From NCBI GenBank assembly GCA_965649765.1, contig OZ287755.1:11718001-11782000 (forward strand): a stretch of DNA of 64,000 nucleotides, given 5' to 3'. Both the position numbers and the translations under genes were made by a program. The notes below the pieces were generated by a model. The model saw only the letters and a program-made list of their open reading frames with translations. It made no database searches and was not told the origin of the DNA. Shown here in pieces: positions 6,880 to 60,386 of this stretch. The number at the start of each line of letters is the position of its first letter. Positions within the stretch are counted from its first letter, which is position 1. Source of the DNA: Bispira polyomma (lineage: Eukaryota).

Positions 6880-7946
6880 ATGGATCATAATAAAGATTAT
6901 CGAAGTTTATGTTCCTTATCAGAAATGGAGGAGGTAATTCAAAAGAGAAGAAAAATGAAGTTTCTTCTTAAGGAATGTGTCATCTTGGCTGAAAAGGTAA
7001 ATGATAAAGGTGTCCTTGGATTGCTTGAGATAATACAGAAGCCCATTGAAAGGGACTCAAAAGATATAACAATACAGTTTCCATTGATCATCAACTTATA
7101 CCATAATTATTGGTTGGTATTTAGATCCATGAAGGAAAAAAATGGAGATGCAGCAATGGAACTTCAAAGTTGTGAAAAAATATTGGAGTTGAATGTAAGG
7201 GATATGGAAAATCTCAACTTGTACTTTGTACTGATTAATCCAGGTGTAAATGTCAATGATATTTTCCTATCTAATCATACCTTACTACATCAGTTTGCAA
7301 GGCGTGGATCAGTGCATTACTTAAAGTGGTTACTTGAGAGAGGTGCTGAAATCAATAGCAGGGAGCGAAAGTCTGGAATGACTGCTCTCATGATAGCTGC
7401 TCGGTTTGGAGATTCCAGTATGGTTAAGTTTTTGTTAGATTCCAAAGCTGATCCATCACTTGTGATAGATCCCAACGAATCGGCTATCAGTCTTGCATTT
7501 ATGCACAGCAGTGATATGACCTTTCAGCTATTACTAAATAGACTACTTAAAAAAGACCCTACTGTAGATATTGCAGCGCACCTCAAACTCATGAAATTTG
7601 AAAAGTCTTTCATAACAACATTGGATGGAAGCACTGACAAATATCTGTTGGCTATTGTGATTAGATGGAGAAAATACTGGAATAAGCATTACCGGTACAG
7701 CGAATCCTTTAGACCAATGGTGGAGTTCATTTGTGATGACAAAGATGTCTATGTCAAGTTCCTGCAGAAGGCAACAATAAGACATGATTATTTAATGGTG
7801 AAGCTACTTCTGCGAATACTATTTCGTATGAAGAATGACAAGATGCATCCATATATCATAAATGGTTTTAAATATGCAGTTGAAAATGGTTGTGATCATA
7901 AAGTTTTACAGCAGTACAGATTCACGAGCACAGGCATTAGTTTGGG
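6880..7946 (+). CDS. Ankyrin-repeat / cGAS-like receptor (ANK-cGLR) copy 1, coding exon 1 (ankyrin region)
   Basis: Ankyrin consensus matches: HTLLHQFARRGSVHYLKWLLERGAEINSRE, GMTALMIAARFGDSSMVKFLLDSKADPS, ESAISLAFMH. The donor GTATGT at 7947 is positionally conserved in copies 2, 3 and 5. The start may instead be ATG 6925. Confidence 0.9.
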
Positions 7947-8269
7947 GTATGTTTTGAGTATTTCTCCATAATGATTGGCCAAATCTCTAAAAAGTTATAA
8001 AAATTGAATTCTTTGGTTATTAGGCGTCAAATATATTGTATATGCAATTTGATACATTTTGCAAAATTGATTTTTACCTACTGCATATTGCCCTATTCTG
8101 AAGTCTAAAACATTTTACATAAACTTGTGACTGTGTGAGTCAACGAAAAAGAAATTGTGTATGTGTGTTTGTCATATAAGTAAAACGCTGCTTTGTTATT
8201 TTTACAGGGAATATAAAGCCTTTTTGTGTGTATCATTGTCCTTAAAGTAAACACTATTTTTTTTCACAG
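7947..8269 (+). other. Phase-2 GT-AG intron of copy 1 (323 bp)
   Basis: GTATGT...ttttttttcacAG. Splicing joins GG+G (Gly) and keeps both long ORFs in frame. Homologous donors and acceptors occur in the paralogues. Confidence 0.88.
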
Positions 8270-9896
8270 GCAATATGTACGTCCCTACTGCTCAGTTGTA
8301 ACTGTGACAGAAAAGTTACATTGTCAACAAAGACACCTATCACAACTCCCAAAGAAGTATCAAAGTAATCTGTTTGTTCTCTACTGTGCTTATTGGCATG
8401 ATCTCATGGGTGGTGTCATTGGAGTCATCATTGATGTTGGACTAGAAAGTCATTTTAGAAAATACCTGTCAGTGAACCCTTACTCTCATCTGTTTATCAA
8501 AGAATACAAAGGACTGCTCTGTTTCCATATGGTCATGCAACGCCCTTGGCTGTGGAAGTATTTCTATGATGACTGCATCAAAGATAACTTCTTTCAAAGT
8601 TTAACTGACAGAAATTCACTAGAAACAGCTTACTATTTTGCTGAGTGGTACCATGTCAACCCCAGAAATGATACAGGATATCCTGCTACTGTAAAATTGG
8701 AATCTTGCTCTAGCCTAGGCACAAAAGACATAAAGAAGCTTGACCTTGCAAAAGTGATGCAAAAGACATATATAGGTGGCATATGCAAAGAATCATCACT
8801 CAAAGAAGAACAATATATTCAGAAATGCTTGATTGAACTTCTTTCTAATTTGTCATCAGAAATTCAGAATAGTTCTGAAGGCACACAGGTGTATCTTGAT
8901 GAATGTGACTTTGCTTTTCACCCCATATTTACTGGCAGCTCTGCTGAAGGCACAAAGGTTGGCTTTCCTGATGACTATGACTTTCTCCTACACATGTATA
9001 ATCTAGATGCCATGTTCAATGACTGTACCTTTTTGCCAGAAAAGTCACTGAGTGTTAAAATAACCAAAAATGGTGAAAACGTTTCTGTGCATAGTTTAAT
9101 CCAGACGTTTGTAGATATTTGCAACAGAAAATTGGATGTTTGCCATTATCCAAAGGGATTTTTTCTGAAGAAGAAGATTACTTATGATTTGAAACCGCTG
9201 TCTCTTGCTGTCCACTGGCGAGGACAATATTTTTTAGATCTGACAATAACAATTGACATTGTTCCAGCATTTAAAATTTGTTCAGCAACATTTTGTAAAA
9301 TCTTCCCAAAAAAAGGACCCCATCTGGTAGAACATGCGATTTACTTTATACCGAAACATCTGGGTTTCACAGACACAGATTTACGTTGGTCTTTCTCAGT
9401 TCATGAGCTTGCGCGTTTAAAAAATCTTCCAGCATGTATTAAAGATGGATATAAGTTGGCAAAAGCCATGCGACATAAGGAAATATGTCCATCAATAGAG
9501 GTGGCGAGAGGAAGATATGTTGATGCAATTGAATCTATTTCATCCTATATGTTAAAAACATGTCTTTTACATGTAGTTCAAGACTCATCAATCAACAATT
9601 CTTGTCAGAGGGTTTCTGAAGGTACTTACACTATCCTCTATCATTTAAGCTTGCTGTGGGCTTTAAAAATATATCGGAAGATGAAGCTATTTCTTCAAAA
9701 TTGTGATGGTATGATACCTAGCTATTTCATACGGACAGCAGATATTTGCTCTAGATATTCAATGGGAAGTATAAGGGGAGAAAATGAGGAAGAGTTGCTG
9801 CAGGAAGATATGAAAACGGTCATGTTTTTTGTTGACACTATCATAGAACTATTGGAGCACCGCTCAAATATGTATCAGAGCACTGCTATGTGTTAA
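8270..9896 (+). CDS. ANK-cGLR copy 1, coding exon 2 (linker plus Mab-21/cGAS-like nucleotidyltransferase)
   Basis: Uninterrupted ORF with TGSSAEGTKVGFPDDYDFLL, ITIDIVPAF, WSFSVHE, YKLAKAMR and SSYMLKTCLLH, the ordered motif set of Mab-21/cGAS-family NTases. Confidence 0.92.
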
Positions 9897-10958: not shown

Positions 10959-11229
10959 CTTGAATTTGAATTTGGATGTTTAACATCCACTCTAGTACCT
11001 TTTAGTAGGTTATATTGGGATGGGCAGTCGGAACGCTGGAGGAAACACTATATACAGTTGGTCAAGGTTCTGCACTGAAACCAGCGGCCCACAGTAAGGA
11101 ACTACCACTTTTCCCACATAGGCATTGACGGGAGTCGAACTCACGCTAGCCGATCCTAGAGGTGAGAGACCAGTAATTGTGAAGCGAACTGCTTGCTGAC
11201 CACTTGGCCACCGCGCCCCCCCCCCCCCC
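10959..11229 (-). mobile_element. SINE family 1
   Basis: Reverse-complement match to 2843-3111; TSD cccctgattta at 10948-10958 and 11230-11240; poly-C tract at its 5' end. Confidence 0.9.
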
Positions 11230-11972: not shown

Positions 11973-11978
11973 TATATA

Positions 11979-14005: not shown

Positions 14006-14790
14006 CTAACAAGCCCCACTACCCAGTTAGCCCAAAGATATAGTACAGTGATGAGACTAAACAAGCCCCACTACCTATTTAGCCCCATGATCTAGTACAC
14101 TGCTAAACTCTACCCAGCCCCACTACCCAGTTAGCCCCACAATCTAGTGCACGGAAGAGATCTAACCAGCCCTACTGCCAAGTTAGCTTATAATATAGTA
14201 GAGTGATAAGATCTAACAAGCCCTACTACCCAGTTAGCCCCATGATCTAGTACAAGGAAGAGACCCAATCAGCCCCATTACCCAGTTAGCCTCATAATAT
14301 AGTACATAGATGAGCTCTAACCAGCCATATTACCAAGTAAGTCCCATAGCCTTGTAGACTGCTAAGACCTGACCAGCCCCACCACCTAGTTAGTCCCATG
14401 TTCTAGTACAGTGATCAGATCTAACCAGACCCACTACCCAGTGAACCCCATGATCTGGTACAGGAAGAGACACAACCAGCCCATTACTTAGTTAGCCTCA
14501 TGATCTAGTACAGGGAAGATACCCAATCAGCCCAATTACGAGTTAGCTTCATGTTCTAGTACAGTGATGTTACCTAACCAGTCATATCATCTAGTACAGT
14601 GATGGGAAATAACCACCCCCACTATCTATTTTGACAAATATTCTAGTACAATGAACACCTAACCAGCTCTACTACTCAGTTTCCCCATAATCTAGTACAG
14701 GAAAGAGAACCAACAAGCCCCACTACCCGTTAGTCCCATAGTCTAGTACAGTGATAAAACCTAACCAACCCCATTACAAAGTAAATGCCA
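14006..14790. repeat. 52-bp minisatellite, about 15 diverged units
   Basis: Consensus close to ctaaccagccccactacccagttagccccatgatctagtacagtgatgagat; tagtac at 14041 and 14093 gives the 52-bp period. Confidence 0.93.
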
Positions 14791-16869: not shown

Positions 16870-16987
16870 ATCTAGTGATGAGACCCAACCAGCCCCACTA
16901 CCCAGTTAGCCAATAATCTAGTACAGTGATAAGAACCAACCAGCCCCACTACTCAGTTAGCTAATGATCTAGTACAGGGATCAGACC
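16870..16987. repeat. Detached block of about 2 units of the same 52-bp minisatellite
   Basis: tctagtgatgagacccaaccagccccactacccagttagcc... repeated. Confidence 0.85.
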
Positions 16988-17058
16988 TATGCGGATTTTA
17001 AACGATCAATGGGGTTGGTGCATTAATTTAACCCCAGAGATCGTTTAAAATCCGCATA
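16988..17058. other. Long hairpin, probably the terminus of an unclassified DNA element
   Basis: Perfect 20-bp inverted repeat tatgcggattttaaacgatc / gatcgtttaaaatccgcata, with an inner tggggtt / aacccca stem. Confidence 0.8.
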
Positions 17059-19833: not shown

Positions 19834-20087
19834 AAATTTTTTAATTGGGATATTTGACGTCCACTCTAGTACCTGTTTAAGTTATATTGGGAGGGATAGT
19901 TGGAAACGCTGCAGGAAACCCTGCATACAGTTGATCAAGGTTCTGCACTGAAACCAGCGGCCCACAGTAAGGAACTACCACCTTTCTCACATAGGCATCG
20001 ATGGGAGTCGAACTCATGCCACCCAGAGGTGAGAGACCAGTGATTGTGAAGTGCAATGCTTGCTAACCACTAGGCCACTGTGGCCCC
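19834..20087 (-). mobile_element. SINE family 1
   Basis: Reverse match to 2843-3111; 12-bp TSD ggtacatccaat at 19822-19833 and 20088-20099. Confidence 0.92.
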
Positions 20088-22161: not shown

Positions 22162-22315
22162 CAGTCCAATGGTGGTGTGAAAAGTTATAAGTTAATAAGT
22201 AAGTTTATTATAAGACAGTAAAAGATTGCATTTGAGGTTTTTATTTACATGTTAGCTTATGTACAGGTTGACAATCAAAGTCAGTTAAAATTTCAGGATG
22301 GAATTTTAAGCCCCA
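22162..22315 (-). repeat. Split direct repeat B2
   Basis: Matches 23415-23568 with one visible mismatch (aataagtaag vs aataggtaag). Confidence 0.95.
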
Positions 22316-23191
22316 TCACGGCTACCATAAAATACAGCCGGGTCAAAAATAAAAACCCATAATAAAGCTAATAATAAGCTAAGAGACAATCACAAATATA
22401 AAGAATAGTGTAAACCCCTCAGTCACACCAGACTTTGGATTAGAACCAATAAAATAACCTCAAAAGAGGAAAATACATTTAAATACATTGATTACTATAA
22501 ACATGACTATCATTAACATCACCTTCAACTAGTTCATTGTGTGAATAATGTACTGTAATATATAACAAAGTTACTTTTGGTGACTAAGATACTAAGAACA
22601 ATTTCAGGGGATAAACTTCCCTGTTTACTGTAAATTCTGACATGTATTTGTGATACATGGATACTAATTGATGCTAGGTGATCGTGTACAAAAAGGTGCC
22701 CTTGTGGGGACCACACGTGTACCCAAGTTATCGTCATTGTGTCTAAATTGGTACGTTGTGTTACTTATTCAACAAGTGGTATTAACTAGCTCAGTAAGTG
22801 TCCCTTGGATCGTTAACTTGAGTCATATGAAGCTGACCACTCTAATGTCGCGTATGTTATAACCCCATATGAGTCAATGTTCAACTATGCTTATAAATTG
22901 AAAATAAGTCCATGCAAGAGAGAACATGCAACGTAGTAACAGCAGGACCCCGGGCCTTGGACACCAACCGCCTAGCAGGGTGAAGTCCAACCTCTCAGAG
23001 CCCCTTATTCCACTCTGGAACCCCAGTGGTGAACTCAGAGGAGGGAGTAAGAAGGAAGGACCCCAGACCCACACGGCCCGGAGCCCGGCCGCCACGTTGC
23101 CATCAAACCTGCCTGGATAACCTTATGCATCAGAGAACCTTAAAAATTTCTATAAATCCTTAATAACGCTGTGGTAAGGGGAGGTGGTGGG

Positions 23192-23568
23192 TTTCAATTT
23201 TCTAAATATCCTGTTCACAGGTGAAAACACAAATTCAATATGGAGGATAGCTATCCTAGCTTAGGGGTCACTAATAGCTAATGCTGTGATTGGACAAGGC
23301 CCAGATGGACAGAAAGTTGGATAATGCTATTGCATTCGCTAGGGATTAAGGTAGTGTGATAGAAAAAGGAGGTTGGACTGATCTAGCAGTCCCCTGGGGT
23401 GGACTTGCTATGCACAGTCCAATGGTGGTGTGAAAAGTTATAAGTTAATAGGTAAGTTTATTATAAGACAGTAAAAGATTGCATTTGAGGTTTTTATTTA
23501 CATGTTAGCTTATGTACAGGTTGACAATCAAAGTCAGTTAAAATTTCAGGATGGAATTTTAAGCCCCA
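23192..23568 (-). repeat. Internal B1-A2 junction (circle-junction copy)
   Basis: On the + strand ...ggacttgctatgca|cagtccaatggtgg... joins the two element termini at 23414/23415. Confidence 0.93.
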
Positions 23569-23575
23569 AGCCCAA

Positions 23576-24549
23576 CTAAGAAGGAGGGATAGCCGCAGCA
23601 AAGGTGAGAGGCACCACTGAAGCAGCTTGGGAGGTCTTCTGTAGGTAGGTCCATACAGCTGAAGACCTCCACAGGCCATGGGACATAATATTCTGCAGTG
23701 ATACGTTTTTATTGAAAGCAAATGTGGCCCCCGACCTCCTAAATGTGTGGAACCCGTGTGAATAGTATGGAATGCCTATGTGTTCTAAGACTCTCTGTAA
23801 TGCGACTCTCACATGTGTCTCTATGACTGGGTAAAATGGTGGTGAGTTAACTGCAAACAGTGGTGCAGATGGAGGGAGAGGCCTAGACAAGATAAGCTGC
23901 TGTATAGCCCTTACTGGACATAAAATTTGGTTTTGAAGTGCAGGAATTTGTATAATGTGGGAGTCTGATCTGTTTTGAAGGTTCTTAGCACATTTCAAGA
24001 TGACATGGGCCCCAGGAGGGGCAAAGATAATATCCTGTCTAAGAAAGTGCCTAGATGGGTCAAACGCTGCCCTAGAGTGAGAAGCCAGATTGGAAAGTCT
24101 CAAGAAGCCGAAAAAGGCTAGAAGGAAAATAGCCCTAAAAAGTACTGGATCCTGCAATATCTGACAAGCTTGGGATATCTGTGTTAACTGATGTATATCA
24201 AACAATCCCTTAGGTCTAGGCCTGAAAGTAGAGTTGATGGTAATGCTTCTCGTAAATAAAGAAACAGAGTTGTGTGTAAAAGGAGCCATACTCCACTGTA
24301 ATTTGTTAGCCATAAATTTAAGTGATGAGAGGTAATTGGCAATGACAGCCGGTGAAAGGCTATTCTGTGCTAAGTATTCTAAGAAAGCCAGAACTGATGA
24401 AACATTAATGTGTTTAATGCCAGCAACATGTAAGAAAGCTAAAAATGTCTTGAATTGGTTACTGTAAGCTGTAGTGATCTTTGGTCGCAGTGCCAAGTCT
24501 ATTCTGTTGCAGGCTGATTGAACAAGTGTATGAGTGGAACTGGCAGAAC
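23576..24549 (-). CDS. Tyrosine recombinase (phage-integrase family) of the Ngaro element
   Basis: Catalytic set FLRLSN (R), HTFRRSGAT (HxxR) and HGLWRSSAVWTY (W, Y). The frame is open up to a splice-acceptor-like site at 24550-24551. Confidence 0.93.
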
Positions 24550-24555
24550 CTGAAA

Positions 24556-26178
24556 TTACACAGATAAGGCCAGGTCAAAGTACCTTATAGGGACCTCATT
24601 CCATTTATAACAATTTTGTAATTTAACAGTTAGCTCTGCAGTAGGAGGTTTATCTGAAAATAGTCTAGAAAGTGCATCTGCAATCACATTATTTTTCCCT
24701 GGAATGTGTTGTATGTCAATTGTGATGTCATGTGTGGCTGCAAGCAGCCAGATATTCCTCAAACATGAGGCCAGAAAGTCATCCTTAGTTTTTTGTGAAT
24801 TCACAACCAGTACTACGGCCATGTTGTTACAGTGAAACAAAACCCGTTGATGCGCCCACTTTAAAGCCCATACACGCAACGCGAGAATGATATTCAGCAT
24901 CTCTAAGTGAACTATTGTCAACTCTCTGCCAAAAACATTGAAATATGGTGTAGCGTACACCTCATCTTTCCACACGCCTCCTAAACCGGTAAGGCAAGCG
25001 TCTAAATGTAACTCACTCATGTTTTGAATCATAGGATGGTCAATGAAAGTTACTCCGTTAAATGTCTGTAAGAACTGCTTGAACCACGCTAAGTCGTTCC
25101 GCATGTCTTGAGAAATAGCAAATTTCTTCTTACCCTCGTTGTTTCTAAATGCGTGAAGCAGTCTATTAATAAAAGTGCATGCCGGCTTGACGCATTTGTG
25201 CACATACAGAAGTTTTCCTAAGAGGGACTGAAACCGACTGCGCGTTATGAAGCGCCTGTTAAACACGTCGCACACACATTCAAGAATCTCTTCTATTTTC
25301 CCATGCTGGATGCTAATAGTACCAGCGACAGTGTCAATGTTAATACCCAAACAAGTAATGCTAGTACTAGGTGGGGTGCGTTTGTTGGCATTCATTACTA
25401 ACCTGGTCATGTATTCAGTATAATCAAAACCCAACTGCTTGAAACAGGCATTATCTCTTTCGAAATAATAAAATGTATCAGCAGCTTGCTTGATTACAGC
25501 CTGGTGATGAGTTTCGACATTAGTATTACTGGTAGTATTTAAAGAAACAGCCTGAACCTGGATTATGGTTTGAAAGGTTTGAATAATACAAAGGTTTTGG
25601 CTAGGTGGAAATTCAACACGAGCATATACACACTTGGCAGCAGTCACGTCATAAAACATGTGGAAATAACCTGAGAATTTTCCATCCCTATCCCTAATGT
25701 AAACAATTGGGGCCAAATTTTGAATTTCCCCACAAAAAGTTTTCCAATTGGTAACTGATACCTGACACGTGTGTGCCTCTTTGTTCCAAGCTGGTGAATT
25801 AGCATAGTGACTGCTCCCATTTGAAATGCAGGCCTCAGTGCTCCTGTCCCATCTATGGTGACCCGACTGGGTCCTGCTCTGAAATTGAATACATTCATTT
25901 ACATTCTTGGTTTCATACTGGTAGTTGTCGCCAGCATCTACTGAAACTGCAAAATTATTAAAGACATCATTATCAACAAAGTTCACCTTTATATCAGTGT
26001 TGAATACATTATTGACAAACCTTGTACTATCTGACATTATCATCTGCTGATAATCATTACTATTGGAACTTTGCACAATTGTATTAATTTCAGACATGCT
26101 TCTGTCGCAATAACCTAATTCACTGTTTTTGTCCTTTATATTAAACTCTTTTACAAATTTACTGTTACCGTTCATCAT
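24556..26178 (-). CDS. pol-like ORF: RT C-terminal part plus DIRS-type RNase H, without a YxDD core
   Basis: KRTPPSTSITCLGINIDT, FQSLLGKLLYVHKCV, LHLDACLTGLGG, IVHLEMLNI, HCNNMAVV and HIPGKNNVIADALSR. No (Y/F)xDD appears in the 540-aa translation. Confidence 0.85.
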   Translation of the reverse strand: MMNGNSKFVKEFNIKDKNSELGYCDRSMSEINTIVQSSNSNDYQQMIMSDSTRFVNNVFNTDIKVNFVDNDVFNNFAVSVDAGDNYQYETKNVNECIQFQSRTQSGHHRWDRSTEACISNGSSHYANSPAWNKEAHTCQVSVTNWKTFCGEIQNLAPIVYIRDRDGKFSGYFHMFYDVTAAKCVYARVEFPPSQNLCIIQTFQTIIQVQAVSLNTTSNTNVETHHQAVIKQAADTFYYFERDNACFKQLGFDYTEYMTRLVMNANKRTPPSTSITCLGINIDTVAGTISIQHGKIEEILECVCDVFNRRFITRSRFQSLLGKLLYVHKCVKPACTFINRLLHAFRNNEGKKKFAISQDMRNDLAWFKQFLQTFNGVTFIDHPMIQNMSELHLDACLTGLGGVWKDEVYATPYFNVFGRELTIVHLEMLNIILALRVWALKWAHQRVLFHCNNMAVVLVVNSQKTKDDFLASCLRNIWLLAATHDITIDIQHIPGKNNVIADALSRLFSDKPPTAELTVKLQNCYKWNEVPIRYFDLALSV

Positions 26179-26232
26179 TGAATTACCCTTATCACTACCT
26201 AATGTTCGTCCAACTGGTTGTGAATCGTGGCC

Positions 26233-27465
26233 CTAGATGTTACCTTGTTGTTTGTCTGGCTGTTTACTTACATTCGCTTTAAAGCATTTGAACTCTGGGT
26301 GCGACGCGTCCTTTCCTAATGTCTTATTACAATACCAACATACATGACGATAATTGCCATGATCCGCCTTGTGAGTACACTTGCCATTATTAAACAGCTT
26401 ACAGATGGATTTACTATCTGAAGAAGCCCCGTTAGCCAAGTTACTGCCATTGTTGCCTACCATAGCCATCTGGGAGGCACTGATGCGATTCAGTGCCCAC
26501 TGAGTGTTGTCCTGCCAGGACAGCCTGCCTTCCTCGATCTCATGCATACTGACAGCCCAGGCTGTCCTGACAGCAGGCCACGGAAGTGTGGCTGCATCCC
26601 GTAGTGCGTGTACCACTTGGTTCACCATAGCTTTCATTGTTGCCGGATCACTTACTTGTAGCGAGTTGGCCAGCTGGCCAGCCGCCCACTGCGGCAACAT
26701 GAGGTCGTCAAAGACTGGCCTTCGACGAGTCGATCCCCCACCCCAACCTTCGTTAGACCATCTGAGTTGGGGATCAGCTAAAGTAATATCTGTGGAGTTA
26801 TAACGACCAGACTTCTGCCTGATTGAGTGCTTACCCTGGACTAGACCCCTCTGGGCCAAGGCTTCGTAGTCAGCCAGCTGCCTGGTAACGGCCGCCTGCA
26901 CGTTTGGAAAAGATCTTAATGCATCGAGACTGGGGACAATGCCATCTGTGTTGTAACCCTGACCTGTTGGTGGTTGCATCATAGGTTGAGCCAGCGGCTG
27001 CGCGACCCCGTTGTACCTGGGAGGGGGAAGAGGTAACGAATAACCCTCGTGTCTCTGTTGGACCACCGTACCATCCCTCATGGTGTGTAATGGAGAATTA
27101 GCAGGTGTAACTGTCTGTTTGTCCTCTACGAGTTGCAATCGCCGGGTTATGTTAGCGTTGGAGGTCTCCAGACCACGCAGGATGGAAAGAACCTCGGACA
27201 TGCTTTGTGACCCGACTTGTGACTGGGGTACGGCCTGAGATGAGAGCCCGGCTTGGCTAGATGATCCATTTAAACTGGTCAATAACTGAGAATCAATAAG
27301 AGGACACGCAGTGTCAGCAATGACTGTTCTATGTATTTCTGATTGATTGTAAGTATTAGTAGTAGTTACCTGACCAGTACCCCTTTTCTTGGCTGTACTA
27401 GTTGAAGTTGTCTTTGTGGTCCGTTTCTTGCTGCTTAACACAGGAGTTGCTTTTGTTTTCCCCAT
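26233..27465 (-). CDS. gag-like ORF1 with C-terminal Cys/His zinc-binding cluster
   Basis: Basic N-terminus from MGKTK, a coiled-coil-like segment, and CKLFNNGKC...H...HVCWYC...H...C; it is the first ORF after repeat A1. Confidence 0.85.
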   Translation of the reverse strand: MGKTKATPVLSSKKRTTKTTSTSTAKKRGTGQVTTTNTYNQSEIHRTVIADTACPLIDSQLLTSLNGSSSQAGLSSQAVPQSQVGSQSMSEVLSILRGLETSNANITRRLQLVEDKQTVTPANSPLHTMRDGTVVQQRHEGYSLPLPPPRYNGVAQPLAQPMMQPPTGQGYNTDGIVPSLDALRSFPNVQAAVTRQLADYEALAQRGLVQGKHSIRQKSGRYNSTDITLADPQLRWSNEGWGGGSTRRRPVFDDLMLPQWAAGQLANSLQVSDPATMKAMVNQVVHALRDAATLPWPAVRTAWAVSMHEIEEGRLSWQDNTQWALNRISASQMAMVGNNGSNLANGASSDSKSICKLFNNGKCTHKADHGNYRHVCWYCNKTLGKDASHPEFKCFKANVSKQPDKQQGNI

Positions 27466-27559
27466 TTCACACAACAATCACTAGTTCCAGTACCACATCA
27501 GTTAATAAAAAGAAGTAAAATATAAATAAAACCAATTCAGTGTAAATACGTGGTTAAAA

Positions 27560-27782
27560 TTTCAATTTTCTAAATATCCTGTTCACAGGTGAAAACACAA
27601 ATTCAATATGGAGGATAGCTATCCTAGCTTAGGGGTCACTAATAGCTAATGCTGTGATTGGACAAGGCCCAGATGGACAGAAAGTTGGATAATGCTATTG
27701 CATTCGCTAGGGATTAAGGTAGTGTGATAGAAAAAGGAGGTTGGACTGATCTAGCAGTCCCCTGGGGTGGACTTGCTATGCA
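27560..27782 (-). repeat. Split direct repeat A1
   Basis: No mismatch to 23192-23414 seen by eye. Confidence 0.95.
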
Positions 27783-38444: not shown

Positions 38445-41400
38445 ATGGAGGAGTTTATTTGTTATATTAGCCAATTTTGTGACAAGCCTATGTCAATTAC
38501 AATCAGAAGATTAATGGAGAATTTTCTGAAGGAATGTGTCACTGTGGCTCAAAAAGTGAATGACAAAGGTGTCCTGAGACTGCTTAAGATAATACAGGTC
38601 CCTGTTAAAAGTGACTCTAAAAACAAAACAATACGGTTTAAATTGATAAAGAACTGGTTTGTCATGACTGTGATGCTTTTTAGACCCATGAGGGAAGTCT
38701 ACCTTTCACTGCTTGATCGTGCTGAATTCACCACTGGAGATGTACTATCAGACCTACATTGTTGTGACAGCTTATTGGAGTTGAATGCAAGGGATATGGA
38801 CAATCTCAACTTGTACTACGGACTCACTCATTTTGATGTGAATGTTAATGACAGCTTGTCAAATAATTTTCCTTTCTTACACCACTTTGCCATGTCTGGC
38901 TCAGTGCCTTACCTACAGTTGTTACTTGAGAGAGGTGCTGAAATCAACAGCAGGGAGCCAATCTCTGGCATGACAGCTCTAATGCTAGCTGCGCGGTTTG
39001 GAGATTACAGTATGGTTAAGTTTTTATTAGATTCCAATGCTGATCCTTCCCTTGTAGATTACAACAAAGACTCAGTATTCACTTGTGCCTTTCTTCATAG
39101 CAGTGATATGACCTTTGAGCTATTACTTGATAAACTGCTTGAAAGAGACCCTACTGTAGATATTACATGATATTGCATGACAGCTCTAATGCTAGCTGCG
39201 CGGTTTGGAGATTACAGTATGGTTAAGTTTTTATTAGATTCCAATGCTGATCCTTCCCTTGTAGATTACAACAAAGACTCAGTATTCACTTGTGCCTTTC
39301 TTCATAGCAGTGATATGACCTTTGAGCTATTACTTGATAAACTGCTTGAAAGAGACCCTACTGTAGATATTACAGTGCTCCTGAAGCTCAACGAATATGA
39401 AAACTCTTTCATAGTGACACTGGACAAAAGCACTAACAAATATATGTTAGCTATTGTGAGTAGATGGAGAAAATACTGGATTAAGCATTACAGGTACAGC
39501 GAAGCCTTTTGGCCAATTGTGGAGTATATTTGTGATGATAAAGATGTCCTTACCTTTTTCCTACAGAAGGCAACAATGAGAAATGATTATTGAATGGTGA
39601 AACTACTTCTCCGAGTACTATTTCGCGAGAAGAATAACAAAAGGCATCCATATGTCATAAGTGGTTTTGAGAATGCACTTTTAAGTGGCTGTGATGGTAA
39701 GGTGTTACAACAGTACAGATTCACAAATACAGGCAGTATTTGGTTTTGGTACGTATCAAATAATTTATTCCTAATAATTTGCAGTCTCTATATAGTGGCA
39801 GTAATTTAAGTGACAAATGTTTGGCTATTAACCTGAAAATATATTCAATATGCAATTTGATTAGTGAAGATCAATCAAAGATTGTTTGTAATTTCTCCAA
39901 ATAAGACAACAGGTAGTCAATATAAACAATAACTATGCTACAATAGCCTTATGTGTGTATATTTGTCACATAAGTAAACCTTGATTTATTATCTTCACAG
40001 GGAATTTGTACTGCTCAGTGCTATTTTGACAGAAAAGATCCATTGTCAACAAAGACACCTATCACAACTCACCATCAAATATCACAGTAATCTATTTGTT
40101 CTCTACTGTGCATATTGGCACGATCTCATGGGTGGTGTCATTGGAGTCATCATTGATGTTGGACTAGAAAGCCATTTTAGAAAATACCTTTCAGTGTACC
40201 ACTACTCTAATCTATTCATCAAAGAGTTCCAAGGACTGCTATGTTTTAATATGGTCATGCAAAACCCTTTGCTGTGGAAGTATTTCTATGAAGACTGCAT
40301 CAAAGATACCCTCTTTCAAAGTTTATCTGACAAAAATTTGCTTGAAACCGCTTACTCTTTTGCTGAGTGGTACCATGCTACTCCTAGAAATGATACAGCA
40401 TATCCTGCCATTACAAGAAAGGAATCTTGCTCTAGTCTAGACATAAAAGGCAGAAATAAAGTCGACCTTGCCTAATTGATGCAAAAAAGATACGTAAGTG
40501 GTGTATGCAAAGTATCAAGACTCCAAGAAGAACAATATATTCAGAAATGCTTAGTTGAACTTCTTTCTAATTTGTCATCACAAATTCAAAATAGTTCTGA
40601 AGGCACAGAGGTTGGCTATCCTGGTGAACGTGACTTTGATTTTTGCCCTATATTAACTGGCAGCTCCGCTGAAGGCACAAAGGTTGAATATGCCGATGAA
40701 TATGACTTTCTTTTACACATGTTTAAGCTAGAGGGCATATTAATGACTGTACCTTTTCCACCAAAATGCAATCACTGTCTGTCAACATCGACAGAAATGG
40801 TGAAATGGTTCATGTGGGTCATTTAATCCAGCTTTTTGTAGATATTGTCAACAGAGAACTGGATGTTTATCATTTTCCAGAGGGATTTTTCCTGAAAAGG
40901 AAGATAGTTCACATGATTTGAAACCACTGACTTTTGTTGTTCACTAGAGAGGACAAAGATTTTTGGATCTTGCAATAACCATTGACATTGTTCCAGCGTT
41001 TGAAATTTCTTCATAAACATTGCTGAAAATAAACAGAAGCATAAGACGCTCTGTTGAAGAACAAGATATTTACGTCATACCAAAATGTGTAGGCTACCAA
41101 GACACAGATTTACGCTTGTCTTTCTCAATTCATTAGCTTGAGATGTTAAAAAGTGTTCCAGTATATATTAAAGATGGATATAAGCTGGCTAAAGCAATGA
41201 GACATAAGGAAATATGTCCATCAGTGGAGGTGAGGAGAGGAAGGTATGTTGACGCCCTGGAATCTATATCATCCTACATGTTAAAAACGTGTCTTTTACA
41301 TGCGATTAAAGACTTACTGATCAGACCTTCCCCTCAGAGGCTTTCTGAAGACACTATCCTCTATAGTTTAAGTGTGGATTGGGCATTACAGATATATCAG

Positions 41401-41619
41401 AAAATGAAGCTATTCCTTCAAAATAGTGATGGCTCAATACCCAACTATTACGTGTTGAGAGCAGATATTTGCTCAAGATATGAAATGTGCAATAAGAGAG
41501 GGGAGAATGAGACAGAATTGCTGCAGGAAGATTCGACAATTGTCCTGTTTTTCGTTGACACTATCATACAGCTATTGGAGCGGATCATCAAAATGTATCA
41601 ACACACTGGTACACATTAA
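38445..41619 (+). pseudogene. ANK-cGLR copy 3: full-length pseudogene (exons 38445-39748 and 40001-41619)
   Basis: Colinear with copy 1. Internal 200-bp duplication with TGA 39168, TGA 39591, TAA 40473, a frameshift near 40740 and further stops. Confidence 0.93.
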
Positions 41620-48699: not shown

Positions 48700-51600
48700 T
48701 GCCTTTACAAGTTTCAGATCCACTTTGCTGAACACAGTAAAAAAACTTTTGAGAATTTTAATGTGTACATATTAGTAAGGATATATACACGGTCGAATAG
48801 TATCACAGAGGTATACATTTAAAATTTTAAAAATCTCAAGCCAAACTAAGAAAATTTTGTAATAACAGAGACAAAAGTAAGCGATACTACTGAAGCATCC
48901 TTGTGAGTTGAATTAAGGTATGTCCCTACTGCTAAAAAACCTCCATAATGTGACATTATATTTTGAAGGGAACATTGTTATTAAAAGCAAAATTGGCACC
49001 AGATGTGCGAAATGTGTGGAAACTGTGCGATTGTACTGGTATGCCTAAAGGAATAACTACTTTCCTGAGAGCATTTCGGACATGTGAATCTACAATAGTA
49101 TTATGTGAAGCTGTACAGGCTCCAAATAGAGTTAAGAGTTAAACATTTTTGTGCTGTAACTGGGCACCATACATGATTGTCTAGCTGAGGGATTTGTATG
49201 ATGTGTGCTTGGTCCTTGTTCTGTAAGTTGTTGGCCCATTTTATAATAATGTGGGTCCCTGGAGAGCCAAATATTATATCCTTCTGAAATAAATATCGGT
49301 AAGGATCAAATGTTGAAGTAGAATGTGATGCCAGATTAGACATCCTGAGGAGTCCGAAAAATGCCAAATGAGAATTGCCTTATATAATGGTGGATCATCA
49401 AGACTTTTGAAATCAGAGCCGGATGCGAATCTCAAAGATTTCTTTTGGGATGTGGTTTAAAGTGTTAAGTATGTTTCAGGCTTCTAAGATACAATGCAAT
49501 GCTATTATGTGGGAAAATTGACAAATTCCACTCAAATTTGTTTGCCATAAATTTTATGGCTGCGAGGTAGTTATTAATCACTTTGGGTAAAATGTGATTT
49601 TGAAGCAAATATTCTAAGAAAGCTATATCGAAACTTCTTGAATGCCTGTAAAGTAGTGAAAAGCTAGAAATGTTTTGAATTGGTTGTTGTAAGCTGCTGC
49701 TGTTGAAGTTTGCGGTGCTGAACTAATTCTTTGGTAGGCTTTGTCCATCAGTTGTTGAGTGTGATGAGTTGCACCTAAAATCATATATGTAAATTTTAGT
49801 TAAAGTGTTGTATGGGTACTTGATGCCAGGTACATATATTTCCTCAATTATGTGTTTATTTGGTGGATTGTAGAATATAGTCTGGACAAAGCATCAGCGA
49901 TTGTGTTCTTCTTGCCCTGTATGTGCTGAAAAAAAACAGTGTGATGTCAAAAGTTGCTGTAATAAGCCAGATTGCATTTAAGCAGTCAGCTCGGAAAGTA
50001 TCTTTAGTCTTGTTCGAACCGACAACAAAAACTAAGGCCATGTTGTTGTAATTAATTAAAATTCTATGGTGAATCCACTGCTCGACCCTAGCGTGAAGCA
50101 CCACTATTATATTTACCATGTCCAGGTCTACAATGGTTATTTCTTGACCGTATACATTGTAAAATGGTGTAGCATATACTTGGTTCGCCCAGATAGCTCC
50201 AATTCTGGTTAAGCAAGAGTCTAGGTAAATTGTATCTATAGGACTAATTTCTAAAGGTTTAAATTTGCGAAGAAAATTCAAAAACCACTGTATGTCACTG
50301 CGGATGCTGTCAAATTCCATAAAGAGTATATTTATAAAAGCCCTGGCTAATCGCATGCACTGATGGACATACAGAAGTTTTCCTAGAATGGATTGGAATT
50401 TACTGCGCGATATCTGTAAATTTCCTTATATTATTCCAGAATAGTGCCCTCGTATGTGAACATCTATCCCTAAGCATGTCCCAACTATTAGGTGTAGATA
50501 GTTTGTGTTTGTTAATAGGAAGACCTAGATTGGTCATTAAATCATGCAAATCTGAATGCCGCGTTTGAGGCACCCCTAGGAGAGACGCAAATATAATCAT
50601 TGATGTATCAATTGACAGTGTCTCCCTTTTGACGTATGATGTCAGCATTGTTCAACTGAAGTAATTTTCACAGTGTCCATATCAGCTTCATAAAATTTTT
50701 AATTTGTGTCAGAAAGGGCTAGAAAGCTGTATTACTTATCAGGATTGTTGATATCAACAATTCTGGTTTTACTTAAGTCTCATTTGCTGCTGTCAGATTT
50801 TCTAGAGAAGTGTTAATCCAGAACAGATAGAAGCAAATATCAGATCACAACCAGCAGGTGCACTGCCATTATCAGCATACAACTGGTTAGAACATGCCTT
50901 TGTGTTATTTGTAACATTTGTGTCAGAATTAGTCAGTTTATCAATGATTTCCACAATATACTGACTGTATGACTGACCATACAATTTATGACATTTCTTG
51001 TCTTTCTGATACATGATAAATTCCTGTTTAGCATTCTGGATGCCTTTCCCGGTGTAATTATTTACATTTGTGTCAGAAACATTAGTCCCATGTTCCAAAT
51101 TGTCATCTTCAATGACATATAAGTTTGGAGGTTCCACCGTTTTTGTGGAGGGGTTGGTGTTTTGGTTTTTTTTTTCACTTCTTGAAATATTTGATTCTTT
51201 GGTTGTTGGAGAACTACCCATGCACTGTTTTTATTTGCTTATTTGAATTTGCTTCATAACATTTGTTACTTTAAGTGGGGGCTATCTTTGTGTAACGTTT
51301 GAGCACAGAACCAGCACTTATGTTTATATTGTCTGTGGTCAGCCTTGTATGAGCATCGACCAGAGTTGAAAAGCTTACATTTTCTTACCATCTTTAATCC
51401 TAAAACTACCTTTAGAATTTGAACCCTGGGAAATGTCACTCTGTGAATTTACCATAGCAGTGCGGGAGGCAGTTAGCCTCTTAATTTCCCACTGTGTGCT
51501 GCCCATCCATCCCAATCTACCTTCTTCCACACTTCATGCATATTTACTGCCTATGCATTTTTAACTACAGTCCAGGGGAGCGCTGTTTTCAACGTCAAGA

Positions 51601-52450: not shown

Positions 52451-53278
52451 CAGTCCAGAAATGGTGGTAAATGATGGTTTACATTGAACACAACACACAG
52501 CCAAGTGCAGGAATAAATTCCAGCTATTAAGTTTGCTTACCTACACTCTACATGGTGTTTGTGTGTCTTTGCAGAATCAGGTAATCTGTAACAGTACATC
52601 ATAACTTTTTTCACTCTAGTGCTATACATAAAAATATCTGCAAAACTGATTCAGTTTCTACATTTATTTTAACTAGTTGTTGTCAATTGTTTTGTCTCGT
52701 TCTCCTTTATGCCCCGACCAGATCCCTAAATTGTTTCATTCCAAGTTATATGTGCAGATGGTCATTTTAGTGGTGACTTGACGGTAATTCGTAACTATGC
52801 CGGTTAATTGTTTCCTTCAAAGTTATATGTGTAGATAGTCATTTTAGTGGCGACTCGCCTGTAATTGATAACTATGCCAATTAGAATGCTAGACGTATCG
52901 ACCTAACAAACGTTTTGACCCTTTTTATCTGTAATGTAGTGTTCATACTATATTCTACATTGTATTCAAACACAACAGTCGGAAATAAGCAACTGTCAAT
53001 ATTGCTTAACACAATGATACTACCAGCCATTAATACGGTCCATAGTGACTGTAACTGGTGAATACCGGTAATGAAAATATCTAGTATCTTCGCGCTTCAA
53101 ATTATCGATAACGTAAGCATTGCCTTCTTATTTTTTCACTTCCAGTGATCAATAATAGGAAGGTTGATGATATTTGTGTGTCAAAAACTGCTCAAAAGCA
53201 AACCATGTATACTGTCAGCACCCATCTTGCTGGTGTATATTTGTCATATAAATAGACCTTGGTTTATTATTTTCACAG

Positions 53279-55326
53279 GGAATTTGCACTGCTCAATATT
53301 GCTGCGACAGAAGATTTACGCTGTCAACAAAGACATCTATTACAACTCAGCAACTATTATCACAGTAATCTATTTGTACTCTACTATTGGAACTATTGGA
53401 ACGATCTCATAAGTGGTATCATTGGAGTCATTATTGATGCTGGACTAGAAGCTATTTCAGAAAATACATATTATTGTTGAAATCTTGCTCTAGTTTAGAC
53501 AAGAAAGGCAGCAATGAGTTCGACCTTGCTAAACAAATACAAAAAAGGTATATAAGTGGTGTATGCAAAGAATCAACACTGCAAGAAGAACAATATATTC
53601 ACATATGCTTGGTTGAACTTCTTTCTAATTTGTCATTAGAAATTCAGAATAGTTCTGAAGGCACACAGGTTGGGTATCCTGATGAATGTGACTTTGCTTT
53701 TCACCCCATACTTACTGGTAGCTCTGTTGATGGCACAAAGGCTGGCTGTCCAGATAAATATGACTTTCTTCTACACATGAATAAGCTAGATGATATATTT
53801 AATGACCGTACCTTTTCAGTAAAAGGCCAGACACTGCTTTTTGAGAGTAGAGATGACAAGGTCCATATGGGTCCTATATTCTAATCTTTTGTAGATATTT
53901 TCAACAAAAAACTGGTTGTTTACCATTTTCCAAAGGGTTTTTCGCTGAAAAGTAAGATTGTTTGTCACGAGTTGAAATCATTGACTTTTGCAGTCCACTG
54001 GCGAGGAGTATATTTCTTGGATCTCGCAATAACTATTGACATTGTTCCAGCATTTAAAATGTCTTCTCCAGTACTGAACAAATTCCCAAGCATCAGACAA
54101 CATGTACAACATGAAATGTACTTGATACCAAAAAGTTAGTTTTGCTCAAGATATACAATGGCAAGTAAAAGAGTATATACTCAAATCCTTGAGTATGACT
54201 ATAGCATACTCAAGGACTTGAGTATAGGACAGAATATTAATAATAACCATGCTATATCTTCACTTTTCATTTATAAAATGAGATATACAAGTCAGAAACA
54301 ATTAGAAAATGTTACTTTATTGTGTAATTCAATCACACTATGATTATTCAAGCTGTTTAACCCAAAACTCAAAGCCTACTGAAGAGTACATAATATAGAT
54401 AATTGTTAGTTAATTTATATTTAATTAAGTCACTTGCTATTGTTTTTCCTAAACTTTGTTGAAGAAAGGTTAATAATTTATACTATTAATATAAAATATT
54501 TGCCTTTTGTGAGTTGTGTGTAGGCTTTATTTTACACCAATAATTTATATGAACGTAGTTTAAACAGTGAATTAAGGTACATATTTTGTGGCTTGTAAGT
54601 AATGATATTGTCACTAAATTCTATTTCTGTTCCTTTAACATTCAAGAAATAACTCAATATACTGCAACAAGTCATTGAAAGACAAACATTTTAACACTGG
54701 CATATCTATTTATTCCTTCTTCCATGTGTGCACAACACTTAGAAATAATAAACAAAAACAGAAATAAAGTTTATGTAAAAATAATAAAAAAACTTGTATC
54801 TTATATTGGAAAGACAAAATGTTAAAGGCTTGCACCATTAATAAATCTTTTTTGATAAGAAATTACAAAACTTGTTGTACAATAACATAATTTACTGCGA
54901 ATTTGTCAATCAGTGACATCATACAGTTGAGTATATACTCAAAATATGCCTGAGTTTATACTTAGTTGAGTTTACGTTCGAGAATACCAATTTGAGTATA
55001 AACTCAGCTGAGTATAAACTCAAGGTTTGAGTTGAGTACATACTCAGATTTGAGTATACATTTTAAACATGACAGTACTTGAACTTCTAGAAAAACTGAT
55101 ACACTGATACACTTTCAAAAATGAAACTATTTTTTTAAACTAATGATGGCATGATACCCAGCTATTTTATTCAGCCAGCAGATATTTGCTCAAGATATAC
55201 AATGGCAAGTAAAAGAGTAGAAAATGAGTTAGGGTTGCTGCAGGACAATATCAAAATTGTCTTTTTTTTGTTGATACTATCATAGAGCAAAGCATCAATA
55301 TGTATCAGAGCACTGGTATGTGTCAA
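53279..55326 (+). pseudogene. ANK-cGLR copy 4: exon-2-only, rearranged pseudogene
   Basis: Acceptor at 53277-53278; internal deletions; catalytic motif altered to GSSVDG..DKYD; interrupted at about 54136-55115; C-terminal coding remnant 55116-55326; exon 1 absent. Confidence 0.9.
54176..55058. mobile_element. Non-autonomous TIR element inserted in copy 4
   Basis: Termini tatactcaaatc / gatttgagtata (imperfect to about 25 bp), many subterminal tgagta...tactca palindromes, TA context, AT-rich non-coding interior. Confidence 0.7.
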
Positions 55327-56442
55327 ATATCTCTGGTATGGAACAGCAGGACAAAAATGATTTCATTGTATAATACAGTGGAAATTGTCTTCATTGTATA
55401 GTAGAGTAGAATGGTCTCCCTAATATTCTTTGCACTGAGGCAAGGATTACAGGTTTCAGGAAAAAGCTCAAAACACATCGGTACCAACCTGCTTTTGCAC
55501 CTTAACATTCATCTCCTGGTCATTACTGACCTCTGATCAAAAATCATTTCTAATTTTTTTGCTTGCTGATTGGGATGTGCACCACAGAAAATGCCTGGTC
55601 ATCTACTGTGGCGCTTTGGAAGTAAAACCATTAACATTACAGCATTTAACATTCATCTGAAGTACTTTCATCAAGTGATTTTAGTAATTACACTTATATA
55701 TGTATGTGTACAGTTCTAACAATTTTAAACATGACAGTACTTGAACTTCTAGAATAACTGATACACTGATACACTTTCTTGATATTGGTTAGGTTCTCAT
55801 AATGTAAGTACTTTTCACAGGACTTTATTGGATAAATGCCCCCACATACTTAGATCTAATATATTACAGATTGGGTTTTTGGAAATTATAAAGCTTCATA
55901 AGAGTTGTTTACATGTTACTAATCAGGAAATTTGTTATGTTACTACTCAGAATAAACCCTTTTTGATATATTTGACGCTTGCAACATGTATTGACAATTG
56001 ATTTGTTAAAACATTAATGCAGTGTAATACGTGTGAAACTATATGGAGACACTTTTGTCTGCATTCTCTAGACTTTCTAGCAACATTTCAACATGTCAAA
56101 CTTGCCATTTACTTCCTTCTCCTGACCAAAACCTCTCCTTCTCTTGATTTGATTGCTAATAAACTACATACACTAGGTCCCAGGATGCACTGTACATTAT
56201 TGACATTAGTAACTTAAAGCATGAAAACTGCTTTTTTTGATGGTTCTGTCGATTTGGTTTGGAACACAGTAGTGCAATTAAGAATTTTATATTTTAGTCT
56301 GGCAACTTTTATTTTTATACTGATGTAATCTATTTTAGTTTTACAATTATACATATATTAGGGTCTAGTATATGTCAGTAACCAAAATTTATTTTCATAA
56401 TGTACTCGTATAGTTCTATTAAATGTGAACACTCCAGAGACT

Positions 56443-56876: not shown

Positions 56877-57403
56877 GTATTTTTAGAAATCTGAAGACTT
56901 AAACTCCATTTGGTGTGTTTTTTGCTGTAATACATCTTACATGAATTGTTAAATATGCAAGATTTTAATACACTCCTTTATTGTATTTTAATGAATGTAC
57001 TTTAACATTTAGACTGAATAGCTCTTAAAATAAGGATTATGTGAGAACTTAAATGGCACTGTAACACAGAAAAAACAAATCAATACACATAACAAACACA
57101 CAGTTATGCCTAGCTACTTACGTCATATTTGGGTGTGTGTAAATATATTACTTTGTGTTACTTATATATATGTTTTGTTTTCCATTGTATTCAGTACAAA
57201 TATAAAACAGACTCACAATATGTTTGTATCTATATATGACAAATGTAAAAACAGGCACATATGATAACTGCTTTTGGCAAATAATACACCAAATGTTTAT
57301 GCCTGTACCAAAAAAAAACATGGTGGTGGTGTTAAAGTTAAGTCTACTGCAAATTTAATGGATTGTAATAAAGATTCTTGAAGTTTTCATTCCTCATGAA
57401 GAA

Positions 57404-60386
57404 ATGGAGGAGTCTATGCGTCATGTTAGGCAAATTTGTGCAAAAAAAAACATGCCAATTCTAATTAGAATGTTAATGAAGAATGCTCTCGAGCTAGAGA
57501 AATGTGCCACTGTGGCTCAAAAGGTGAATGATAAAGGTATCTTGAGACTGCTTGAGATGATCAAGGAACCGATTAAAAGTGACTCTAAACTTCAAACAAT
57601 ACAGTTTGATTTGATAAAAAAATGGTTCTACAGTTCTTTCTTTATTTTTCAACCCATGCAGGAAGATCACCTTTCACTGTTTGAGGGGGCTGGGTTGATC
57701 ATGGGACATGAAGAATCCCAACTGATCTGTTGTGACAGCTTAATGGAGTTGAATGCAAGGGATATGCAAAATCTTATTTTTTACTACGGACTCATTCATT
57801 TAGATGTGAATGTCAATGACAGCTTGCCGTTTGGTTTTACCTTACCACTTTGCCAGGTGTGGCTCAGTGCTTTACCTTAAGCTGTTACTTGAGAGAGGTG
57901 CTAATGTCAACAGCAGGGAACCATGCTCTGGCATGACAGCTCTCATGATAGCTGCATGGTTTGGAGATTACAGTATGGTAAAGTGTTTGTTAGATTTCAA
58001 CGCTGATCCATCTTTTGTAGATCACAACAAAGAATCGGCGATCACTTGTGCCTTTACTCACAGCAGTGATATGACCTTTGAGCTATTACTAAATAGACTA
58101 CTTGAAAGAGACCCTAATGTAGATATTGCAGCCCAACTCCACCTCAAAGAATATGAAAAGTCGTTCATATTGACACTGGATAAAAGCACTGACAAATATA
58201 TGTTAGCTATTGTGTGTAGATGGAGAAAATATTGGACTAAACATTACAGGTACATCGAAGCCTTTAGGCCAATGGTGGAGTTCATTTGTGATGACAAAGA
58301 GGTGTATCCCAATTTCCTGCAGTTGGCAACAGTAAGAAATGATTATCAACTGGTGAAGCTACTTCTTCGAGTACTAATTTGTGAGAAAAGTGACAAAAGG
58401 CATCCTTATATCTTAAGTGGTTTCAAGAATGCACTTCTAAATTCCTGTGATCATAAGGTTTTACAACAGTACACATTCACAAAAGTGTGTAGTATTGGTT
58501 TGTGGTACGTATAAACGATTTCATCATAATAATTTACAGAATCTTTAAATATTTGTAGTAATAGAAGTGTTTAGCTATCAAACTTATAATATATTTAATA
58601 TGCAATTTGACGTATTTTACAAAATTGATTGGACCCAATTGCAAATTGCTGTACAGGAAAAATAAATTAAAGAATGAGAAGAAATGTTTCTAATTTCTCC
58701 AAGTAAGACAACAGTAGTCAATAAAAGTATTAACCATGCCATAAAGCATTTTTGTGTGTATCATTGTCCTGTAAGTAAACACTAATTTTTATTTTCACAG
58801 GCAATATGTACCTTACTACTGCTCAGTTGTTACTGTGACAGAAAAGTTAACAAAGACACCAATCACAATTCACTGACAAGTATCGCAGTAATCCTTTTGT
58901 TCTCTACTGTGCTTATTGGCATGATCTCATGAGTGGTGTGATTGGAGTCATCATTGATGTTGGAATAGAAAGCCATTTTAGAAAATACCTTTCAGTGTAC
59001 CATTACTCTCATCTGTTTACCAAAGAATTCAAAGGACTACTCTGTTTGCATATGGCCATGCAACGCCCTTGGCTGTGGAAGTACTTCTATGACAACTGCA
59101 TCAAAGATCATTTCTTTCAAAAGTTAACTGACACAAATGCACTAGAAAAAGCTTGCCAATTTGCTGAGTGGTACCATGTCACCCCTAGAAATGATACTGG
59201 ATATCCAGATGCTGTAAAATTGAAATCTTGCTCTAGTCTAGACACGAAAGGCAGAAATGAGGTTGATTTTGTAAAAGTGATACATAAGACATATATAAGT
59301 GGTGTATGCAAGGAATCAACACACAAAGAAGGACAATATATTCAGAAATGCTTGGTTGAACTTCTTTCTAATTTGTCATTACAAATACAGAATAGTTCTG
59401 ACGAGGCGTTCTCTTTTCACCCCATACTTACTGGGAGCTCCGCTGAAGGCACAAAGGTTGGCTTTCCTGATGAATATGACTTTCTTCTACACATGTATAA
59501 ACTAGATGGCATATTTAATGACTGTACCTTTGCCACAACAGAATCTCTGTGTGCCGAAATTACCAAGAATGGTGAAATGGTTCATGTGGGTGAATTACCG
59601 TATTGTTTTGTAGATATTTTCAACAGAAAATTGGATGTTTACCATTTTCCAGAGGGATTTTTTCTGAAGAGGAAGGTCATTTTCTTTGATTTGAAACCGC
59701 TGTCGTTTGCTGTCCACTGGCGAGGAAAGGATTTCTTAGATCTCACAATAACCATTGACATTGTTTCAGCATTTAAAATTAGTTCACCCACATTGCTCCA
59801 AATCTACCCAAGTGTTGCAAAACATGATATTTACTTGATACCAAAAAATGTGGGCCACCAAGACACATAGTTACGTTGGTCTTTCTCAGTTCATCAGCCT
59901 GCGATTGTAAAAAGTGCTCCAGCAGGTATTAAAGATGGATATAAGTTGGCAAAGGCCATGAGGCATGAAGAAATATGTCCATCAATGAAGGTGAGAAGAG
60001 GAATGTTTGTTGACGCAATGGAATCTATATCATTCTACATGCTAAAAACGTGTCTTTTACATGTGATTAGAGATTCACCAGTCAGTCATTCCTCTCAGAT
60101 GGTTTCAGAAGTCACGGATACTATCCTCTACCATTTAAGCCTGAAGTGGGCTTTAAAAATATATCAGAAAATGAAACTATTCCTGGAAACTAATGACGGC
60201 ATGATACCCAGCTATTTTATTCAGACAGCCGATATTTGCTCAAGATACCCAATGGTAAGTAAAAGAGGAGAGAATGAGGCAGGGTTGCTGCAGAACGATA
60301 TCAAAATTGTCTTGCTTTTTGTTGACACTATTATCAAACTATTGGAGCACAGCATCAATATGTATCAGAGCACCGGTATGTGTTAA
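57404..60386 (+). pseudogene. ANK-cGLR copy 5: full-length, lightly damaged pseudogene (exons 57404-58504 and 58801-60386)
   Basis: Three clear lesions: small deletion near 57845, 8-nt deletion near 58848 and TAG 59868. GSSAEG..DEYD..IDIV and both splice sites are retained. Confidence 0.92.

Follow-up and report, generated by a model that had tools for sequence, protein, structure and literature searches.

A 64,000-nucleotide stretch of the Bispira polyomma genome (the window; C8:11,718,001-11,782,000, where C8 denotes contig OZ287755.1) holds five paralogues that combine ankyrin repeats with the core of a cGAS-like receptor (cGLR), all of them on the forward strand. They in all probability belong to a lineage-specific cluster of ankyrin-fused cGLRs that evolves by birth-and-death, accompanied by occasional exchange between paralogues. 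Duplication at the DNA level produced the copies, which retained their reading frames through most of their history and were then broken one after another. The window contains no N, and positions refer to it unless C8, C1 or C2 is named. We refer to the copies in the window as W1-W5, to the upstream copy as U0, to the downstream copies as D6 and D7, and to two further groups at 13.1 and 7.0 Mb of the same contig as A1-A4 and B1-B3, respectively. The genome comprises 1,035 Mb, with at least 14 chromosome-size contigs and a GC content of about 35%.

Self-BLAST and tblastn recovered all five paralogues where the initial annotation had placed them: the intact W1 (6880-9896) and the pseudogenes W2 (29568-32035), W3 (38445-41619), W4 (53233-55336) and W5 (57404-60386). 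Their coding sequences are 75-88% identical, and their flanks are shared in part. The description of this locus as a five-copy head-to-tail array was correct as to strand but not as to extent and spacing: the local array, as seen in a genome search, consists of eight copies across about 110 kb, and its units do not abut, being separated by spacers of 8-20 kb that contain transposon remains. The additional members are U0 (C8:11,695,449 onward, about 22.5 kb upstream of the window) and, on the downstream side, D6 (at about 72 kb on the window scale) and D7 (83-86 kb), together with an ankyrin fragment at about 77 kb. The same search found the three copies B1-B3 (C8:6.98-7.02 Mb) and a broken family copy at 10.46 Mb. 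B1 (C8:6.977-6.980 Mb) is intact and falls into the same clade as W1; it encodes 897 amino acids counted from the conserved start, and its last exon is 64% identical to that of W1. Because B1 is also intact, W1 is the one survivor of the window and of the local eight-copy cluster, but not of the genome. The intact copies thus number one of eight in the local array, one of three at 7.0 Mb and none of the four in the duplicate block at 13.1 Mb, where no complete intact copy is found. Of the older relatives, those located on C9 and C10 have open frames, and the C6 copy is interrupted by a stop.

Translated from the genomic splice, W1 is a single frame of 897 amino acids with zero internal stops. 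Its first coding exon (6880..7946) encodes N-terminal helices, two to three ankyrin repeats (residues 112-194) and further helical repeats; it matches Pfam Ank_2 (E 3e-14), and its structural model is all-helical beyond residue 90, with ankyrin proteins as Foldseek matches. A GT-AG intron of 323 nt in phase 2 (7947..8269) leads to the last exon (8270..9896, with TAA at 9894-9896), which encodes a helical linker of about 170 residues, a cGLR/Mab-21 nucleotidyltransferase (NTase) core and a C-terminal helix bundle. Two alternative splice sites, a GC donor near 7934 and an acceptor further upstream at 8207, were rejected because either breaks the frame; the conserved pair, with its donor at 7947 and its acceptor at 8269, is compatible with it. 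The claim that the copies share this intron position and their flanks stands for W2, W3 and W5, where both splice sites lie at the matching position, and for part of the flanks; W4 retains the acceptor only. The identical phase-2 position recurs in distant paralogues on C6, C9 and C10, and the donor is conserved at two loci of a second species. Because intron and flanks were copied too, the copies arose by DNA-level duplication, and retroposition can be discarded as their source. An alignment of the starts places the start codon conserved across paralogues at 6925 in W1. The preceding segment (6880-6924) corresponds to an upstream open reading frame (ORF) that is kept in W5, D7, A3 and A4 and is joined in frame to the main ORF in W1 only, a fusion that came about via loss of the upstream stop and a 1-nt deletion.

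The active site of cGLRs has been defined as h[QT]GS X8-20 [DE]h[DE]h X50-90 h[DE]h (Li et al., 2023; PMC9980059). In W1 we find FTGS, 11 residues and DYDF (FTGS-X11-DYDF, 8928..8984), followed 89 residues on by IDI, which contains the third catalytic Asp (9255-9257). Profile searches and folding of W1 were run exon by exon. Of 21 aligned relatives, 13 match PF03281 (Mab-21) and 5 match PF20266, and the alignment runs end to end through the NTase core as well as the helix bundle. In the Atlas, the enzyme exon matches Mab-21 clusters at 0.95, and the nearest clusters are eukaryotic and most often from Mollusca. The AlphaFold (AF2) model of this exon has a pLDDT of 75 and a pTM of 0.71, and its top Foldseek matches are all cGAS (E 1.6e-10, probability 1.0, target TM 0.65, identity 14-17%). 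By all three published criteria of sequence and structure W1 is a cGLR, and the identity proposed by the initial annotation is borne out by motif and fold. Ankyrin repeats and cGLR core share one reading frame in W1 via the genomic splice and in a 919-residue relative within a single ORF; a homologue search with the W1 ankyrin exon returned generic ankyrin proteins only. The genome also holds at least 16 Mab-21 matches and a STING-like locus (C1:73.11-73.13 Mb) with two PF15009 exon matches above cut-off. The two-exon layout recurs in the second species, which has its own expansion with at least eight relatives.

Some more distant loci deserve mention in their own right. After the closest homologue in the second species (L051:12989-16009) come a BIR-domain frame and another frame that faintly matches Polinton-like packaging ATPases. 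In B. polyomma, a far more distant Mab-21-like gene lies behind an ankyrin-like exon at C1:74.55 Mb and has a degenerate catalytic triad, and another at C2:55.85 Mb consists of a single open frame of 940 codons.

Vertebrate cGAS, the best structural match to the W1 core, has a zinc ribbon inserted behind the helix next to the SFS motif on its C-terminal side, a basic spine helix and a disordered N-terminus. W1 differs from it in all three respects: a zinc-ribbon His/Cys cluster was not found in the alignment of W1 and its relatives, the spine helix carries three Lys and four Glu in a core with an isoelectric point (pI) of 6.5, and the N-terminus is formed by ankyrin repeats. Judged by these sequence features, that is, because the zinc ribbon is absent and the core is neutral with an acidic spine helix, W1 is not cGAS proper. 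Responsiveness of cGLRs to dsDNA or dsRNA has been tied to a higher pI (Li et al., 2023, Fig. S2; PMC9980059). W1 would be a cytosolic enzyme whose core may make a cyclic dinucleotide or a related nucleotide signal for STING. Given its neutral core and acidic spine helix, the ankyrin and helical N-terminal half is more likely to be the sensing or autoinhibitory part, and as its trigger, a protein or a host complex that has been perturbed would be more likely than naked dsDNA or dsRNA.

The other copies in the window are broken in different ways. All lesions named in the initial annotation are real, but only W5 carries exactly the 'three small lesions' ascribed to it, while W2, W3 and W4 have seven to nine lesions per copy, not one. 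W2 has lost its 5' part and contains frameshifts near 29607, 30094, 30916, 31431 and 31786 and stops at 30004, 30712 and 31783 (intron 30142-30428). W3 is full length, with an exact 200-nt tandem duplicate (200/200) and a 7-nt filler that contains a stop (38968-39374), further stops at 39591, 40473, 40945, 41014 and 41134, and frameshifts near 40740 and 40910 (intron 39749-40000). In W4, the ankyrin exon is lost, 222 nt are deleted at 53477, about 950 nt of unrelated DNA (~54165-55110) stand in place of part of the exon and the terminal stop is lost; it has stops at 53882, 54137 and 55136 and frameshifts near 53448 and 55262. W5 is full length (intron 58505-58800), and its lesions are a 5-nt deletion at 57842, an 8-nt deletion at 58847 and a TAG at 59868. 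Since W2, W3 and W4 each hold many more stops and frameshifts, the lesion first named for them need not be the earliest. Outside the window, a single TAG (codon 554 of 904) separates U0 from an open gene, which makes U0 the best candidate for a segregating null allele. We also observed that the truncation point of W2 (29568) and the start of the tandem duplicate in W3 (38968) fall within 2-3 nt of one codon, corresponding to W1 position 7378, which is possibly a fragile site.

The lesion matrix contains no stop or frameshift that any of W2-W5 have in common; a single ancestral inactivation, one of the outcomes that would have refuted the initial annotation, was rejected on these grounds. W2 and B2 both carry a TGG>TAG change at codon 451, for which recurrence is the best reading. 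Indels point to the same history: those common to non-twin paralogues are all in frame (six, with zero frameshifting), against 22 in-frame and 38 frameshifting ones that occur in dead copies only (Fisher p=0.004), and none of the 13 indels private to W1, B1 or U0 shifts the frame. The ratio of nonsynonymous to synonymous substitution rates (dN/dS; pairwise or tree-wide values throughout) is 0.58 across the family, which beats a ratio of 1 by 62 log-likelihood units, and in the domain-wise calculation asked for by the initial annotation it stays below 1 in the ankyrin part (0.42), the NTase core (0.70) and the helix bundle (0.49). Between W1 and B1 it is 0.62 (0.75 in the NTase part), and between the twin copies described below 0.79-1.10. 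Independent inactivation of the copies after duplication, as originally proposed, is therefore well supported, and so is its recent date.

Part of this history can be ordered by means of a second duplication, which serves as a natural control. From position 40439 to its end at 64000, the window belongs to a duplicated block on the forward strand, which continues to at least the equivalent of position 92800 and thus spans at least 52 kb. Its twin, found 1.4 Mb away from C8:13,131,354 onward, is 93-98% identical and carries A1-A4 (13.13-13.17 Mb), the twins of W3, W4, W5 and D7, respectively. The left end of the block lies inside the last exon of W3, gap-free and beside unrelated DNA. Differences between twins were assigned to one or the other by majority vote among the paralogues. 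W5 and A3 are 97% identical (75 substitutions in 2,534 nt) and have zero lesions in common: A3 carries deletions of 29 and 54 nt, none of which overlaps the lesions of W5, so that the gene from which both descend was open. In the stretch of codons 505-897, W3 is disrupted by four stops and two frameshifts, and A1, its twin, is free of either. W4 and A2, as well as D7 and A4, have some lesions in common in addition to private ones, and were therefore dead before the block was copied. Several copies broke within the last 1.5-2% of sequence divergence, with W1 and B1 still open; the spare copies, once redundant, would have been lost neutrally.

Two side observations concern the edge of this block. 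In W3 (40439-41611), four nonsense changes occur among about 17 private substitutions, where 0.7 would be expected (p=0.004 for this single branch, about 0.03 over eight). A1 (C8:13,131,342 onward) is cut by the breakpoint, but 12 nt beyond this point lies an in-frame ATG whose context is strong; the resulting open frame of 419 codons covers the whole cGLR core and no ankyrin repeats. Because of a Val-to-Asp change in its catalytic loop, A1 may nevertheless be dead and stop-free by chance.

The block could also be a misplaced piece of the other haplotype, in which case A1-A4 would be alleles of W3, W4, W5 and D7 and the turnover would be polymorphic within one individual. The twins do have the same orientation and order, and alleles of highly heterozygous marine invertebrates can differ to this degree (93-98% identity, with many indels). 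The left junction, however, lies within the last exon of W3 without an N gap, next to a flank that has no counterpart near the window, and we regard a misplaced haplotype as unlikely. If it were one, the twins would be alleles and their lesions still independent.

The copies are also mosaics of one another. Trees of four gene segments conflict: U0 joins W1 when the linker is used and W3 when the NTase core is used, and W4 groups with W5 at the 3' end. Maximum chi-square breakpoints lie near codons 165-185 (U0) and 833 (W4/W5), each with a permutation p of at most 0.0005 among 495 triplets. Likewise, W1 and D7 are 83-92% identical in the 5' flank and 75-83% in the coding region. A derived short duplicate of the catalytic loop (8874..8912 in W1), which adds nine amino acids through a 27-nt insert (24 nt in W1), occurs in most copies on C8, B1-B3 among them, but is missing from W2, W5, A3 and every outgroup. 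As W2, W5 and A3 are not a clade, it has either been lost on two occasions or been transferred by exchange. With regard to concerted evolution, the copies are 12-25% apart and exchange is evident in patches. Given this mosaic structure, recombination accompanies birth-and-death, and the turnover claimed by the initial annotation, for which duplication, independent pseudogenization and selection followed by neutrality all speak, has to be extended by exchange between copies.

Instead of being lost neutrally, extra copies could be selected against, through an upper bound on the dosage of an immune enzyme that activates itself, and pruning would then leave a single working gene per cluster. The counts of intact copies at the three sites would fit this, as would the nonsense excess in W3. 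Yet stops that follow a first lesion bring no gain, so that pruning does not predict the W3 excess; the other twin branches show no such excess, and neutral decay yields the same pattern. We therefore consider pruning improbable. We give equally little credence to a more far-reaching proposal, in which the family would be an ankyrin-gated cGLR subfamily that does not sense nucleic acids, its extra copies would be purged to one per cluster with a survivor that differs by haplotype, and duplication would have created an ankyrin-less enzyme in A1.

Several points weigh against birth-and-death of a functional cGLR family. By sequence alone, W1 stays below the Pfam cut-off (Mab-21_C, E 0.06) and matches a solved cGLR with an E of 0.84 only; because these Pfam and PDB searches with the last exon are weak, its assignment was decided by fold and homologues. 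W1 also shows in-frame losses of 39 and 33 nt near its N-terminus, dN/dS values for pairs of intact copies are high (0.6-0.75) and would be expected under relaxed just as under diversifying selection, and the role suggested above for the ankyrin part is deduced from charge. The high dN/dS and the N-terminal deletions would equally suit a C8 clade that has lost its constraint as a whole and is in terminal decay, with W1 merely unhit so far. Along its own branch, however, whose length is about 0.125 substitutions per site, W1 has accumulated five private indels, all in frame, and no stop, compared with two to six lesions on most twin branches of 0.01-0.03, and its active-site residues are intact, which makes terminal decay highly improbable. 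Finally, assembly errors can be dismissed almost entirely as the source of the lesions: a few are 1-nt indels in short base runs (W2 near 30094, W3 near 40740) and the W3 duplicate is identical at 200 of 200 positions, but most are nonsense substitutions or deletions of 4-222 nt, W4/A2 and D7/A4 repeat lesions in the assembly sequence at two places 1.4 Mb apart, and the dN/dS of the twins is near 1.

The window also contains repeats of several kinds. Between W1 and W2, a DIRS/Ngaro-type tyrosine-recombinase retrotransposon occupies 22162-27782 on the minus strand. Its direct repeats are split (223 nt, 100% identical, and 154 nt, 99%), and it has three open frames, one gag-like, one bearing RNase H and one encoding the recombinase. 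As its middle frame has no YxDD motif, the element is probably recent and non-autonomous. Decayed older DIRS-like relatives are found in the spacers at 28200-28900, 33900-34350 and 48800-51200, one of them directly upstream of the W2 truncation point. An interspersed repeat of about 260 nt, abundant genome-wide, occurs in five copies and both orientations (2843-3098, 10960-11221, 19839-20087, 33236-33492 and 35714-35918), and a 52-nt tandem repeat forms an array at 14006-14790 with a short second patch at 16874-16989.

Multigene clusters of immune receptors that evolve by birth-and-death are described by the model of Nei and Rooney, and the present locus resembles such clusters in its clustered paralogues, its pseudogenes among intact genes and the purifying selection that preceded their loss. 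Ankyrin-fused cGLRs have been described, as have cGLR expansions in bivalves and cnidarians (corals) that reach more than 200 genes (Li et al., 2023; PMC9980059); pseudogenes are nowhere mentioned in the main text of that article. Those proteins are like W1 in active-site motif, NTase core with helix bundle, cGAS fold and N-terminal ankyrins; the W1 subfamily differs in adding about 300 residues of helical sequence between ankyrins and core and, in most C8 copies, the nine-residue loop duplicate. In Drosophila, cGLRs have been duplicated and lost repeatedly, as in this cluster, resulting in two to seven per genome and including one clade of low predicted pI (bioRxiv 10.1101/2023.05.08.539652). 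The Drosophila data count intact genes between species, whereas here the broken copies of an ankyrin fusion are seen in place in one genome. The mussel study of gene presence-absence variation (PMC7653742) rests on variation between individuals, and the present work on one genome.

The cluster clearly exemplifies the gain-and-loss turnover already known for cGLRs and is not a new kind of system, and it leaves our understanding of cGLR families and immune clusters unchanged; what is unusually clear is the internal dating of loss. Gain and loss of cGLRs have so far been inferred from gene counts between species, and here the turnover is visible in place, where a block diverged by about 2-4% brackets several gene deaths, so that turnover can be ordered. 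U0 with its one stop and W5 with its three lesions are the obvious places to seek segregating working alleles. W1 and B1, as intact ankyrin-fused cGLRs with a neutral core, are suited to asking what such fusions sense and make, a question left open by the work cited above.

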